From positions 237,335 to 301,334 of the forward strand of contig NIVC01000033.1 of NCBI GenBank assembly GCA_002269645.1: a stretch of DNA of 64,000 bases, written 5' to 3'. A program made the position numbers and the translations under genes. The DNA comes from Macrostomum lignano (lineage: Eukaryota). The notes under the pieces are model-generated. The model was not told where the DNA came from and searched no databases. It was given only the letters and a program-made list of their open reading frames with translations. Below, one piece after another: positions 39,601 through 45,600 of the stretch. Within the stretch, counting starts at the first letter, position 1. Every line of letters starts with the position of its first letter.

Positions 39601-42600
39601 ATGTGTGACTTCAGTCTGGTTTGAGCCACAGACATCAGCTGCTGCTTCAAAATGCTTGAGATCAGCAGAAGCTGTAGTCTATGGTTTTAGCCCCGGGTTT
39701 TCGCACTCCGACCAGGCAGCTGGAGAGGCCCATCTAGGAGCTTATAGAGTCTGTGAGACCAGACCACCATAGACCAATAAGTATATCATCATGTTCGCAA
39801 ATTACAACAAACTGTTACCGTACGAATTTGAGCGACATTGGTCTGTAGTACTCAATACTCATATTAAACATGCCATGGATGTTTCCCACAACTTAAAAAC
39901 GGAGGGTCCATCAATGTAAACTCTTTGTGGTTGTCGTGCTGTACAGGCAGATAGATAGGAAGGTGGTATCACGTCTATGACTGGCTGCTGGCAAAAGGGA
40001 CACTTGTAATGACAGTAGCAATCGCAGAGGGGGTCTGAAAGATAGCGAGTGACAGAGTAGGAGTGACAGATGGCCAAGCAGTTCTGCTCTCCTACCGGAA
40101 GTCGCAGTTGGCCTCTTCCCTCTGGTCGACCTCGCGCTGCAGATTGTCCAAATTGTCCTTCAGCTGCTGGATCTGCCGCTTGTAGGCGGCCTCCTCCTCC
40201 TCTGTGCGACGTTGAATGTGCGACAGATCGCCCTGCATGCGCATCTTCAGCCGCTCGACCTCTTCGACGCGTTCCTTCAAGATTAGCGGAGAGAAATTTA
40301 GTTTCTCTCATTCAGTAGAACTTGACGCAAATCAAGGCAGGCAAGCGTATTCCATCATCGTCAGTTATGCACACACTCTGAGCCCTGAGAGCCTTTTGGC
40401 CATAGACAAACACCTCACCCGTTCAGCAACCTCCTTGGCTCGAGAAAGCTGCCTGTTGGCGTCCGTGAGCTCGTCGCAGGTGGCGCCAATGGTGCGCAGC
40501 TTGTCCTCCAGGTCGCCCAATCGCAGTTTTAAAGAGTTCCGCTCCTCGCTAGTCTCAGCGATCTTCATGAGTGACGCCTCCAGCTCCTGTTAGATGGTCA
40601 ACCGTTTTGTTTCTAATGCTCATGTACCTGTTGATTGAGCTCCTCTACCGGTTGATTGAGCTCCTCTACCTGTTGATTGAGCTCCTCTATCTGTTGATTG
40701 AGCTCCTCTACCGGTTGATTGAGCTCCTCTATCTGTTGATTGAGCTCCTCTACCGGTTGATTGAGCTCCTCTATCTGTTGATTGAGCTCCTCTACCTGTT
40801 GATTGAGCTCCTCTACCGGTTGATTGAGCTCCTCTACCTGTTGATTGAGCTCCTCTACCTGTTGATTGAGCTCCTCTATCTGTTAATTGAGCTCCTATAT
40901 CTGTTGATTGAGCTCCTCTATCTGTTGATTGAGCTCCTCTATCTGTTGATTGAGCTCCTCTACCTGTTGATTGAGCTCCTATATCTGTTAATTGAGCTCC
41001 TCTACCTGTTAATTGAGCTCCTCTACCGGTTGATTTGAGCTCCTCTATCTGTTGATTGAGCTCCTCTATCTGTTGATTGAGCTCCTCTATCTGTTGATTG
41101 AGCTCCTCTATCTGTTGATTGAGCTCCTCTATCTGTTGATTGATCTCCTCTATCTGTTAATTGAGCTCCTCTATCTGTTGATTGAGCTCCTCTATCTGTT
41201 GATTGAGCTCCTCTATCTGTTGATTGAGCTCCTCTACCTGTTGATTGAGCTCCTCTACCTGTTGATTGAGCTCCTCTACCTGTTGATTGAGCTCCTCTAT
41301 CTGTTGATTGAGCTCCTCTACCGGTTGATTGAGCTCCTCTATCTGTTGATTGAGCTCCTCTACCGGTTGATTGAGCTCCTCTATCTGTTGATTGAGCTCC
41401 TCTATCTGTTGATTGAGCTCCTCTATCTGTTGATTGAGCTCCTCTATCTGTTGATTGAGCTCCTCTATCTGTTGATTGAGCTCCTCTACCTGTTGATTGA
41501 GCTCCTCTACCTGTTGATTGAGCTCCTCTATCTGTTGATTGAGCTCCTCTATCTGTTGATTTGAGCTCCTCTACCTGTTGATTGAGCTCCTCTACCTGTT
41601 GATTGAGCTCCTCTATCTGTTGATTGAGCTCCTCTATCTGTTGATTGAGCTCCTCTACCTGTTGATTGAGCTCCTCTACCTGTTGATTGAGCTCCTCTAC
41701 CTGTTGATTGAGCTCCTCTATCTGTTGATTGAGCTCCTCTACCTGTTGATTGAGCTCCTCTATCTGTTGATTGAGCTCCTCTACCTGTTGATTGAGCTCC
41801 TCTACCTGTTGATTGAGCTCCTCTACCGGTTGATTGAGCTCCTCTATCTGTTGATTGAGCTCCTCTACCTGTTGATTGAGCTCCTCTATCTGTTGATTGA
41901 GCTCCTCTATCTGTTGATTGAGCTCCTCTACCTGTTGATTGAGCTCCTCTATCTGTTGATTGAGCTCCTCTATCTGTTGATTGAGCTCCTCTATCTGTTG
42001 ATTGAGCTCCTCTATCTGTTGATTGAGCTCCTCTACCTGTTGATTGAGCTCCTATATCTGTTGATTGAGCTCCTCTACCGGTTGATTTGAGCTCCTCTAT
42101 CTGTTGATTGAGCTCCTCTATCTGTTGATTGAGCTCCTCTACCTGTTGATTGAGCTCCTCTATCTGTTGATTGAGCTCCTCTACCTGTTGATTGAGCTCC
42201 TATATCTGTTAATTGAGCTCCTCTACCTGTTAATTGAGCTCCTCTACCGGTTGATTGAGCTCCTCTACCGGTTGATTTGAGCTCCTCTATCTGTTGATTG
42301 AGCTCCTCTATCTGTTGATTGAGCTCCTCTACCGGTTGATTGAGCTCCTCTACCGGTTGATTGAGCTCCTCTACCGGTTGATTGAGCTCCTCTACCTGTT
42401 GATTGAGCTCCTATACCTGTTGATTTGAGCTCCTCTATCTGTTGATTGAGCTCCTCTATCTGTTGATTGAGCTCCTCTACCTGTTGATTGAGCTCCTCTA
42501 TCTGTTGATTGAGCTCCTCTACCTGTTGATTGAGCTCCTCTACCTGTTGATTGAGCTCCTCTATCTGTTGATTGAGCTCCTCTATCTGTTGATTGAGCTC

Positions 42601-45600
42601 CTCTACCTGTTGATTGAGCTCCTCTATCTGTTGATTGAGCTCCTCTATCTGTTGATTGAGCTCCTCTATCTGTTGATTGAGCTCCTCTATCTGTTGATTG
42701 AGCTCCTCTGTCGATTGAGCTCCGCTTCCTGTTGATTGAGCCTATCTGTTGATTGAGCTCCTCTATCTGTTGATTGAGCTCCTCTACCTGTTGATTGAGC
42801 TCCTCTATCTGTTGATTGAGCTCCTCTATCTGTTGATTGAGCTCCTCTATCTGTTGATTGAGCTCCTCTATCTGTTGATTGAGCTCCTCTACCTGTTGAT
42901 TGAGCTCCTATATCTGTTGATTGAGCTCCTCTACCGGTTGATTTGAGCTCCTCTATCTGTTGATTGAGCTCCTCTATCTGTTGATTGAGCTCCTCTACCT
43001 GTTGATTGAGCTCCTCTATCTGTTGATTGAGCTCCTCTACCTGTTGATTGAGCTCCTATATCTGTTAATTGAGCTCCTCTACCTGTTAATTGAGCTCCTC
43101 TACCGGTTGATTGAGCTCCTCTACCGGTTGATTTGAGCTCCTCTATCTGTTGATTGAGCTCCTCTATCTGTTGATTGAGCTTCTCTACCGGTTGATTGAG
43201 CTCCTCTACCGGTTGATTGAGCTCCTCTACCTGTTGATTGAGCTCCTATACCTGTTGATTGAGCTCCTCTATCTGTTGATTGAGCTCCTCTATCTGTTGA
43301 TTGAGCTCCTCTACCTGTTGATTGAGCTCCTCTACCTGTTGATTGAGCTCCTCTACCTGTTGATTGAGCTCCTCTACCTGTTGATTGAGCTCCTCTACCT
43401 GTTGATTGAGCTCCTCTACCTGTTGATTGAGCTCCTCTATCTGTTGATTTGAGCTCCTCTACCTGTTGATTGAGCTCCTCTATCTGTTGATTTGAGCTCC
43501 TCTATCTGTTGATTGAGCTCCTCTACCTGTTGATTGAGCTCCTCTACCTGTTGATTGAGCTCCTCTATCTGTTGATTGAGCTCCTCTATCTGTTGATTGA
43601 GCTCCTCTATCTGTTGATTGAGCTCCTCTATCTGTTGATTGAGCTCCTCTATCTGTTGATTGAGCTCCTCTATCTGTTGATTGAGCTCCTCTATCTGTTG
43701 ATTGAGCTCCTCTATCTGTTGATTTGAGCTCCTCTATCTGTTGATTGAGCTCCTCTATCTGTTGATTGAGCTCCTCTGTCGATTGAGCTCCGCTTCCTGT
43801 TGATTGAGCCTATCTGTTGATTTGAGCTCCTCTACCTGTTGATTGAGCTCCTCTATCTGTTGATTGAGCTCCTCTACCTGTTGATTGAGCTCCTATATCT
43901 GTTAATTGAGCTCCTCTACCTGTTAATTGAGCTCCTCTACCGGTTGATTGAGCTCCTCTACCGGTTGATTTGAGCTCCTCTATCTGTTGATTGAGCTCCT
44001 CTATCTGTTGATTGAGCTTCTCTACCGGTTGATTGAGCTCCTCTACCGGTTGATTGAGCTCCTCTACCTGTTGATTGAGCTCCTATACCTGTTGATTGAG
44101 CTCCTCTATCTGTTGATTGAGCTCCTCTATCTGTTGATTGAGCTCCTCTACCTGTTGATTGAGCTCCTCTACCTGTTGATTGAGCTCCTCTACCTGTTGA
44201 TTGAGCTCCTCTACCTGTTGATTGAGCTCCTCTACCTGTTGATTGAGCTCCTCTACCTGTTGATTGAGCTCCTCTATCTGTTGATTTGAGCTCCTCTACC
44301 TGTTGATTGAGCTCCTCTATCTGTTGATTTGAGCTCCTCTATCTGTTGATTGAGCTCCTCTACCTGTTGATTGAGCTCCTCTACCTGTTGATTGAGCTCC
44401 TCTATCTGTTGATTGAGCTCCTCTATCTGTTGATTGAGCTCCTCTATCTGTTGATTGAGCTCCTCTATCTGTTGATTGAGCTCCTCTATCTGTTGATTGA
44501 GCTCTATCTGTTGATTGAGCTCCTCTATCTGTTGATTGAGCTCCTCTATCTGTTGATTTGAGCTCCTCTATCTGTTGATTGAGCTCCTCTATCTGTTGAT
44601 TGAGCTCCTCTGTCGATTGAGCTCCGCTTCCTGTTGATTGAGCCTATCTGTTGATTGAGCTCCTCTATCTGTTGATTGAGCTTCCAGCTCGTCCACCTGG
44701 CTAATCCATTGCAGTATTAAGTTGGATTTCTCACCTCCTCCAGCGCGATGACTTTCTGCTGGCTCATGTAAGCCTGGGCCTGCATCTCCTCCCGGGTCTG
44801 GTTCAGCTTCTTCTCCAGCTCGTACCGCTGGAACTCGGCGTCCTCGTTCTGGCGCACCAGCTGGTACAGCTCGTCCCGCTCGGCAAGGATGTTCTCGATC
44901 TCCTCCTTGGCCACGCCGATGCTCTCAAAGTCCTGCAGCTCCTTGGCGCGGGCTCGGCAGCTTTCTTCCATTCGACGGAGCTGCTCCTTCTTCTGGTTGA
45001 GCTCCTCGCCCAGCTGCTCAACCTCCTTGGCGGTGCTGTCCCGCTTCATCTGAGCTAGCATGAGCTCAGTTTTGGTGTCCTCGGCTAGGGACTTGTTGTC
45101 CTTGCACAGCTTCTCGGAGAGACGCACCTCCGCCTGGTGCCGTCTGAGGCAGTCCTGCACGTAGTGCAGCTCTCCCACGATTTTCTGTGAATTTGAGGGG
45201 CAGCATCATCACCTGTTCAGAATCATGTTCATCATCATGTTCAGCATCCTGTTTAGCATCCTGTTCAGCATCCTGCTCAGCATCCTGCTCAGCATCCTGC
45301 TCAGCATCCTGCTCAGCATCCTGTTCAGCATCCTGTTCAGCATCCTGTTCATCATCATGTTCAGAATCCTGTTCATCATCCTGTTCAGCATTTTTTATTA
45401 GAGGCAGGGGGGTTGTGTGCACCCTGGCGCACTTTAAGCGACATTGGCACACAACCGGCGAGAGGCATTGCTGCCCATTCTGCCGACTCCCCTGAGCAGG
45501 CATACAAGCGCGCGGATACGTACGCAGGTACACACTCACACAGGAGTGTACAGCGGCCCTAACTTTTTTTTATCGTTAGGCATGTACACTTCACTGCGCC

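Follow-up and report, generated by a model that had tools for sequence, protein, structure and literature searches.

The stretch of DNA described here (64 kb, hereafter the window) belongs to contig NIVC01000033.1 of Macrostomum lignano (assembly GCA_002269645.1), with which it showed 0 mismatches over the 26,990 nt compared, including a 4148-nt intron. On its minus strand lies a gene for a long coiled-coil protein, and intron 8 of this gene is occupied by a tandem array of a 21-nt unit that reads as a coiled-coil heptad. The origin and coding state of this array are the subject of the present analysis. A protein database search with the 435-residue translation of the flanking exons returned M. 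lignano proteins with 95-96% identity. The host gene model is P0040 (BOX15_Mlig030482g1; Mlig030482.g1), a protein of 1294 aa encoded on contig NIVC01000033.1. Its spliced mapping to the window was exact and placed 18 exons and 17 introns, all of them GT-AG, at 54626-33640 of the minus strand. The GenBank annotation of M. lignano was built from a genome-guided RNA-seq transcriptome (PMC5730564). The features of the junction, in window positions and in the order of transcription, are listed below.

44735-45184, minus strand: exon 8, 450 nt, ending in ...QQKVIALEE, phase 0 (exact spliced mapping of P0040)
40587-44734, minus strand: intron 8, one GT-AG intron 4148 nt long with the ends gtgagaaa...catctaacag (P0040 mapping; the same 4148-nt intron in NIVC01000033.1)
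44697-44734, minus strand: 5' unique flank of the array, 38 nt, gtgag..ccag, which holds the true donor and was earlier proposed as a first "micro-intron"
44669-44696, minus strand: first unit of the array, degenerate, 28 nt, GTGGACGAGCTGGAAGCTCAATCAACAG, containing GAGCTGGAAGC, a 10/11 match to the first 11 nt of exon 9
40628-44682, minus strand: 21-nt minisatellite, delimited by a tandem repeat search, a unit census and pattern matches
42708-44631, minus strand: higher-order structure of the array, with the marker motif GGAAGCGGAGCTCAATCGACAG occurring three times (44631, 43797 and 42729)
40628-40879, minus strand: last 12 units; their heptad frame has no stop and is in phase with exon 9
40587-40627, minus strand: 3' unique flank, 41 nt, gtacat..aacag, which holds the true acceptor and was earlier proposed as a second "micro-intron"
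40419-40586, minus strand: exon 9, 168 nt, starting in phase 0 (spliced mapping of P0040)

The array comprises 194 head-to-tail units at 44696-40628, a count that may be imprecise for a 4-kb array in a long-read assembly. On the minus strand the unit has the form GAGGAGCTCAATCAACAG[A/G]TA and encodes EELNQQ[I/V]. Tandem Repeats Finder (TRF) reported one array at 40628-44682 with a period of 21 nt, 193.7 copies, 93% matches and a score of 6792. The pattern GAGGAGCTCAATCAACAGRTA, searched with up to three mismatches, gave 173 matches where 0.01 were expected, and every one of them lies on the minus strand within 40625-44686. No further copies of the unit were found elsewhere in the window or in the paralogous loci. 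These results bear out the preliminary description of this DNA, which had reported a 4-kb minus-strand heptad minisatellite beginning with GTGGACGAGCTGGAAGCT, flanked by pieces of 38 nt and 41 nt and by exons in phase 0 on both sides.

The unit census distinguished 19 unit types. The 21-nt forms included 82 ATA-type, 54 GTA-type and 15 CCGGTA-type units, the last with Gln replaced by Pro, and the off-length forms included 15 units of 22 nt (CTCAAATCAAC), five of 17 nt and two of 18 nt. In-frame stop codons occur as TAA in ten units (AATTAACAG) and as TAG in ten others ([A/G]TATAGGAG). Over the whole array, 19 units shift the frame, 20 carry an in-frame TAA or TAG, and 23 have the Gln-to-Pro change. 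The stop-free state of the last 12 units and the presence of stops and of +1-nt (22-nt) and -4-nt (17-nt) forms upstream of them had also been described correctly. One string of 32 units is present twice, exactly, and inside the array a segment of at least 680 nt recurs exactly, in direct orientation, at an offset of 837 nt (starts at 44504 and 43667 on the minus strand). The last 12 units end in ...EELNQQ, followed by VHEH*.

The product across the junction in P0040 reads ...QQKVIALEE and then ELEAS..., in phase 0 on both sides, and the whole intron, array included, is absent from the annotated mRNA. The junction ALEE/ELEAS is common to P0040, to P0001 (the model of a second copy of the locus) and to P0003 (a paralogue). 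Intron 8 has consensus ends and is removed in the transcript model, and its site and phase are kept in homologues, as is expected of a genuine GT-AG intron. The preliminary description had offered two outcomes for the gene, either skipping of the whole array by joining 44735 to 40586 or inclusion of a variable number of heptads. The former is the one seen in P0040 and P0001, whereas the latter appears in no gene model or database protein. The model P0002, which starts exactly at ELEAS, might suggest a transcript starting at exon 9. This reading was dropped, as P0002 is a UniParc model with no contig recorded; it is probably a gene model truncated at the array.

The second copy of the locus was found on contig NIVC01003644.1, which is collinear with window positions 55730-31588 at about 85-94% identity. 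A recent whole-genome duplication has been described for M. lignano (PMC10468722). In the same intron of the second copy, the 5' flank is 100% identical and the 3' flank near-identical to those of the window, and the array between them has 33 units instead of 194. Array copy number thus differs sixfold between two copies of one duplicated genome. The second array has private variants (GAT/GAC/GAA), as is typical of concerted evolution. An assembly artefact is unlikely, given the array at the same site in two independent contigs. Exon 8 of the second copy is without one C (ctctcgagaag versus ctctccgagaag; L001 ~9940-9950 versus window ~45125-45105), and P0001 starts only at MLAQT, with its last ~150 residues in a wrong frame of exon 12. 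These defects reflect either a decaying duplicate or long-read assembly errors.

In an old paralogue pair, P0003/P0032 (66% identical), an intron lies at the same phase-0 site and no exon is found there. This intron is 410 nt long (L003, 7913-8322) or 299 nt long (L004, 7289-7587) and holds an unrelated array of a 12-nt unit, ACTCATGCTCTG, in 29 and 18 copies, leaving 81 or 93 nt of unique sequence. A common origin of the 21-nt and 12-nt arrays from the start of exon 9 was considered, the 7-mer ACTCATG of the paralogue array being present also at the start of exon 9 in the window. It was rejected as too thin, since this 7-mer is all that is shared (P ~0.01, post hoc). Intron 7 of the paralogue pair (after residue 387 in P0003/P0032; L003, L004) contains a 52-nt x 7 array in one copy, where it measures 390 nt, and no array in the other, where it measures 78 nt. 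Here the birth of an array in a short intron is seen directly, as presence versus absence.

Full-length relatives of the host protein were found in a brachiopod, a nemertean, an annelid and a mollusc. In the MAFFT alignment, the orthologues from Lingula, Tubulanus, Owenia and Haliotis are gap-free through the junction (in Owenia, ALEE is followed by ELENS). It had been predicted that orthologues would contain a short exon between two introns of ~40 nt, and that a single intron without such an exon would speak against an amplified exon. The orthologue proteins of four phyla and the single intron of the paralogue fall on the latter side. The host gene encodes a long, uncharacterised coiled-coil protein whose orthologues are spread across Lophotrochozoa. 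Neither Pfam nor the PDB sequences gave a hit above threshold for it. The name "CEP209_CC5 domain-containing", a UniProt label of one cluster member, was not adopted, as our own domain scan did not reproduce the label.

Tandem repeats, mostly of 4-60-nt units, constitute 45.6% of the window, and simple and tandem repeats make up 15% of the M. lignano genome, which is unusually rich in them (PMC5730564). Arrays are the rule in the coiled-coil gene as well: 11 of its 17 introns (54463-33964) contain one, each its own. Subtraction of the arrays leaves 78-148 nt in five introns, and the repeat-free introns of the gene are 91-144 nt long. The shortest, of 91 nt, agrees with the value of about 90 nt given in the preliminary description. 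The set of mapped introns comprised 50 (17 of the window gene, 16 from either copy of the paralogue and, from the second locus copy, the homologous intron). None of them is below 50 nt, and the shortest, of 78 nt, is about twice the length of the proposed 38-nt and 41-nt introns. Intron 8 itself is made up of 4055 nt of tandem repeat and 93 nt of unique sequence. This remainder has the normal size of a short intron (81 and 93 nt in the paralogues), which identifies the pieces of 38 nt and 41 nt as the opposite ends of one intron. The flanks were also considered as decayed array, and this was discarded, their likeness to the unit being non-significant (P=0.72 for the 38 nt and P=0.37 for the 41 nt) except for the first ~10 nt of the 3' flank, which opens with a decayed unit head (GTACATGAGC versus GTAGAGGAGC). 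In M. lignano operons, intergenic distances are likewise described as inflated by repeats (PMC8629364).

Several other arrays of the region were recorded. Intron 7 of the window gene contains the 12-nt repeat GCTGAACAGGAT at 46165-45758 (34 copies) and 45391-45212 (15 copies), which reads (QDAE)n on the gene strand. The second locus copy has it as well (L001 9590-9851). Being frame-compatible, the repeat could pass for coding sequence. G-rich arrays of GGAGTGAGGTGGG-like units occupy window positions 8835-10266, 35845-36031 and 37669-38222 and are found also in intron 12 of the paralogues (L003/L004), in the opposite orientation relative to the gene. They look like a dispersed repeat family, unlike the 21-nt array.

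The reading frame and the splice signals of the array were then evaluated. The three sense frames of the intron contain 79, 46 and 79 stops, with no open stretch exceeding 342 codons. The frame entered at 44696, behind the "ccag" acceptor, reaches a stop after 35 codons and reads otherwise than the short-exon peptide that had been proposed, which is wrong; retention of intron 8 leads to a stop after five codons. The frameshift, nonsense and proline variants have been propagated together with their neighbours in block duplications, so there is no selection for reading frame. A 104-residue heptad query against a database of 5.8 billion sequences revealed no heptad-array protein, and the matches were weak, unrelated coiled coils. 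A coding exon would be expected to show a continuous in-phase frame and repeat residues in mature or homologous proteins, and neither is seen here.

A position weight matrix (PWM) derived from the 33 introns of the host gene and one paralogue served to score splice sites. The true sites of intron 8 scored 10.9 bits (donor) and 6.9 bits (acceptor), against medians of 8.3 bits for true donors and 6.8 bits for true acceptors, the weakest true sites having -0.5 and -2.1 bits. The sites proposed to bracket an exon scored lower, with 1.3 bits for the ccag acceptor and 3.9 bits for the gtacat donor, and donors inside the unit did not exceed 2.7 bits. The true donor GTGAG matches the published M. lignano donor consensus GT[G/A]AG (PMC8629364), whereas GTACAT and GTAGAG do not.

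With high confidence, the array is read as a locus-specific, non-coding minisatellite, or variable number of tandem repeats (VNTR), that grew in an ancestral phase-0 intron of ~93 nt and is spliced out whole. Tandem 21-bp copies beyond chance, a copy-number difference, and variant units and block duplication without coding constraint are the features of this class. The array is ordinary for this genome. In the proposed course of events, the array would have grown in the middle of the basal ~93-nt intron and pushed its two unique flanks apart. Growth presumably proceeded by slippage or unequal exchange of single units, together with duplication of blocks of ~40 units, and the array evolves without reading-frame constraint. 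The seed was possibly copied from the GAGGAGCTCAACCAGAAGAAGGAGCAGCTC segment of exon 8 and/or from the start of exon 9. The opposite view of the preliminary description, that an exon had exploded into a satellite between two micro-introns, does not agree with the single intron of the paralogue, the gap-free orthologues, the frameshifts and stops, the lower scores of the candidate splice sites and the 78-nt size floor of the 50 introns.

A group of observations pulls the other way and concerns the likeness of the unit to coding sequence, its signals and the annotation. A clean a/d heptad in a sense frame arises in only 3-7% of random 21-mers, and an exact 6-mer shared with the host protein in ~0.1% of them. 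The unit trimer scored 30 against the coding sequence (CDS) of the gene, a value reached by 5 of 6000 nucleotide shuffles, and the unit in sense orientation was the top outlier (z=5.8) of the 76 array-versus-CDS tests in the window. Acceptors inside the unit reached a middling 4.4-5.1 bits, which among AG decoys corresponds to the 92nd-95th percentile. The last 12 units of this array, and 214 codons in the other locus copy, are open and in phase with exon 9. Transcripts overlapping repeats were dropped before the GenBank submission (PMC5730564), and rare array-containing isoforms would therefore be absent from the annotation.

The coding segments that most resemble the unit are the following.

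46205-46222, minus strand: exon 7 segment GAACTGAATCAGCAGGTG (ELNQQV), an exact 6-residue match to the unit peptide
44978-45007, minus strand: exon 8 segment GAGGAGCTCAACCAGAAGAAGGAGCAGCTC, closest to the unit of all coding sites (24/30 nt, ungapped, same frame)

Both had been pointed out before, as ELNQQV at 46222-46205 and GAGGAGCTCAA at 45007. All comparisons of the unit with the CDS were post hoc. Arrays outside the gene gave P>0.02 in 48 of 48 array-versus-CDS tests. The motif GAGCTGGARGC has only two sites in the window, the array start and the start of exon 9, and the alignment of these two starts (16/19) was better than in all 1000 shuffles. The exact 6-mer match occurs at a rate of 0.85% among heptads of the host's own composition. 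When the seven codons of the unit were kept and their order varied, 4-9% of the orders matched the CDS equally well. The best ungapped 21-nt likeness of the unit to the gene region (16/21; P=0.11 against shuffles) was not significant. The fact that the four differences from the ELNQQV of exon 7 all fall at third positions was rejected as a sign of selection, because the match was found at the peptide level and the differences are then necessarily synonymous.

The likeness of the unit to host coding sequence is thus a statistical outlier that is partly more than chance and largely the shared codon vocabulary of a Glu/Leu/Gln-rich gene. A seed of the 21-nt unit copied from nearby coding sequence of the same gene is plausible and unproven, and from the sequence comparisons it may be entertained as a tentative possibility rather than as the expected origin. 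If the seed was coding-derived, the unit would for that reason happen to read as a heptad in the frame of the gene, and the phase-0 fit of the last units would be inherited, not selected. The likeness neither requires nor supports translation. A second array of the gene resembles its coding sequence, namely that of intron 3 (49320-49079; 22-nt unit TTTGGCGCCACCTGACAGTAGC), which has an exact 13-mer, TTGGCGCCACCTG, in common with exon 9 (40489-40477; z=3.8, P ~0.007 against shuffles). Arrays resembling the coding sequence of this gene number two inside the gene and none outside it.

It was also considered that the array is a dead exon, i.e., that after the split of the paralogues the Macrostomum lineage gained a short heptad exon, which was amplified, decayed and is now always skipped. 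The likeness of the unit to the host CDS in sense and frame (24/30 nt in exon 8, the 6-mer ELNQQV in exon 7) and the fact that both flanks begin with GT and end with AG are in line with such a history. No such exon is present, however, in the window, the second copy or both paralogues, and the flanking sequence sums to a normal basal intron of 93 nt, as against 81-93 nt in the paralogues. In addition, the ccag acceptor is poor (1.3 bits), the first units give no open frame, and the match to the CDS is reproduced by the 4-9% of codon orders with fixed codon content. A dead exon is considered very improbable.

Under another explanation, the array is a facultative coding region. A minority of transcripts would splice into its stop-free 3' end (12 units here, ~30 in the other copy) through the in-phase AACAG acceptor of the unit and the CAG/gtacat donor, or CAG/GT motifs, gaining n x 7 residues of EELNQQ[I/V] and a coiled coil of variable length. 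The in-phase fit of the last 12 units to the two exons, the 214 open heptad-frame codons of the other copy, the rank of the unit acceptors among AG decoys, the textbook a/d heptad pattern I/V-x-x-L with an exact 6-mer shared with the host protein, and the annotation filter, which could conceal such isoforms, would all suit it. Frameshifts, stops and prolines nevertheless close most of the array, which bears no mark of purifying selection, and the donors needed (gtacat at 3.9 bits, unit donors at 2.7 bits or less) are off the GT[G/A]AG consensus. The terminal intron of 41 nt would be about half of the shortest (78 nt) among the 50 mapped, the heptads occur in no gene model or database protein, and the orthologues are without residues at the site. 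Such splicing is considered very improbable. The least probable proposal, that the array is intronic and functional in RNA or DNA, as recursive-splicing ratchet points at CAG/GTAGAG or as a length that modulates transcription or splicing efficiency, draws on 58 CAG/GTAGAG and 169 AACAG motifs in register and on the array position common to two locus copies, but these sites fare poorly by both the local PWM and the published consensus, the two copies differ sixfold in copy number, and most other introns, like the homologous paralogue intron, are filled with unrelated arrays, so that neutral accumulation is favoured.

The intronic, non-coding minisatellite has several consequences for the interpretation of similar loci. 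In repeat-rich genomes, an intronic minisatellite with a period that is a multiple of three can mimic an amplified exon with GT/AG "micro-introns", and the mimicry is strongest where the host is a coiled-coil gene that shares its codon vocabulary with the repeat. The locus shows how M. lignano introns lengthen, a basal intron of ~80-100 nt hosting a private array. Duplicated gene copies differ in array presence and copy number, and in old paralogues the arrays of the same intron are unrelated. With its sixfold difference in length between the two copies, the array is a convenient marker for duplicated chromosomes or laboratory lines. The novelty that is left lies in a possible exon-derived seed and, with a very small chance, in low-level heptad inclusion. 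If exon-seeded, the array would be a small example of coding DNA giving rise to a satellite; if heptads were included, array-length polymorphism would tune the length of the coiled coil.

Other genes of the window include a striatin gene 3' of the coiled-coil gene, as in the public annotation (27262-19740, minus strand), with the N-terminal ERKGQENLKHDLVRRIKMLEFALRQER and C-terminal WD40 repeats. A reverse-transcriptase-like open frame containing GVLQGDTLAPFLFVL was found near the window start (1685-2125, plus strand).

The array was compared with known repeat systems. Like higher-order-repeat satellites such as alpha satellite, it has multi-unit blocks duplicated whole, and it differs from them in being single-locus, euchromatic and intragenic and not a chromosomal satellite. 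Recursive splice sites occur in long introns of Drosophila and vertebrates. The M. lignano intron shares with them adjoining acceptor-like and donor-like CAG/GT motifs in a long intron, whereas its GTAGAG is off GT[G/A]AG and its motifs are present in dozens of copies as part of the repeat unit. Coding minisatellites are represented by the 60-bp repeat of MUC1, the 48-bp repeat of DRD4, the 54-bp repeat of PER3 and bacterial heptad-repeat surface proteins. As in these, the period is a multiple of three and the consensus has one open frame, here a coiled-coil heptad; in contrast to these, the M. lignano array contains frameshifts and stops, is absent from the annotated mRNA and database proteins and has no orthologue counterpart.

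The intronic minisatellites or VNTRs provide a further comparison, examples being the repeats in intron 2 of human SLC6A4 (16-17 bp) and in an ABCA7 intron (25 bp). The M. lignano array is similar to them in having a head-to-tail unit in the 10-60-bp range inside a spliceosomal intron and in being removed with that intron. Copy number likewise differs between locus copies, and variant units and block duplications are present. The M. lignano array differs in its extent, with 194 units and 4 kb being very large for a host intron of ~93 nt, in a unit that reads as a clean heptad in the host frame, and in its occurrence in a genome where arrays fill most introns.

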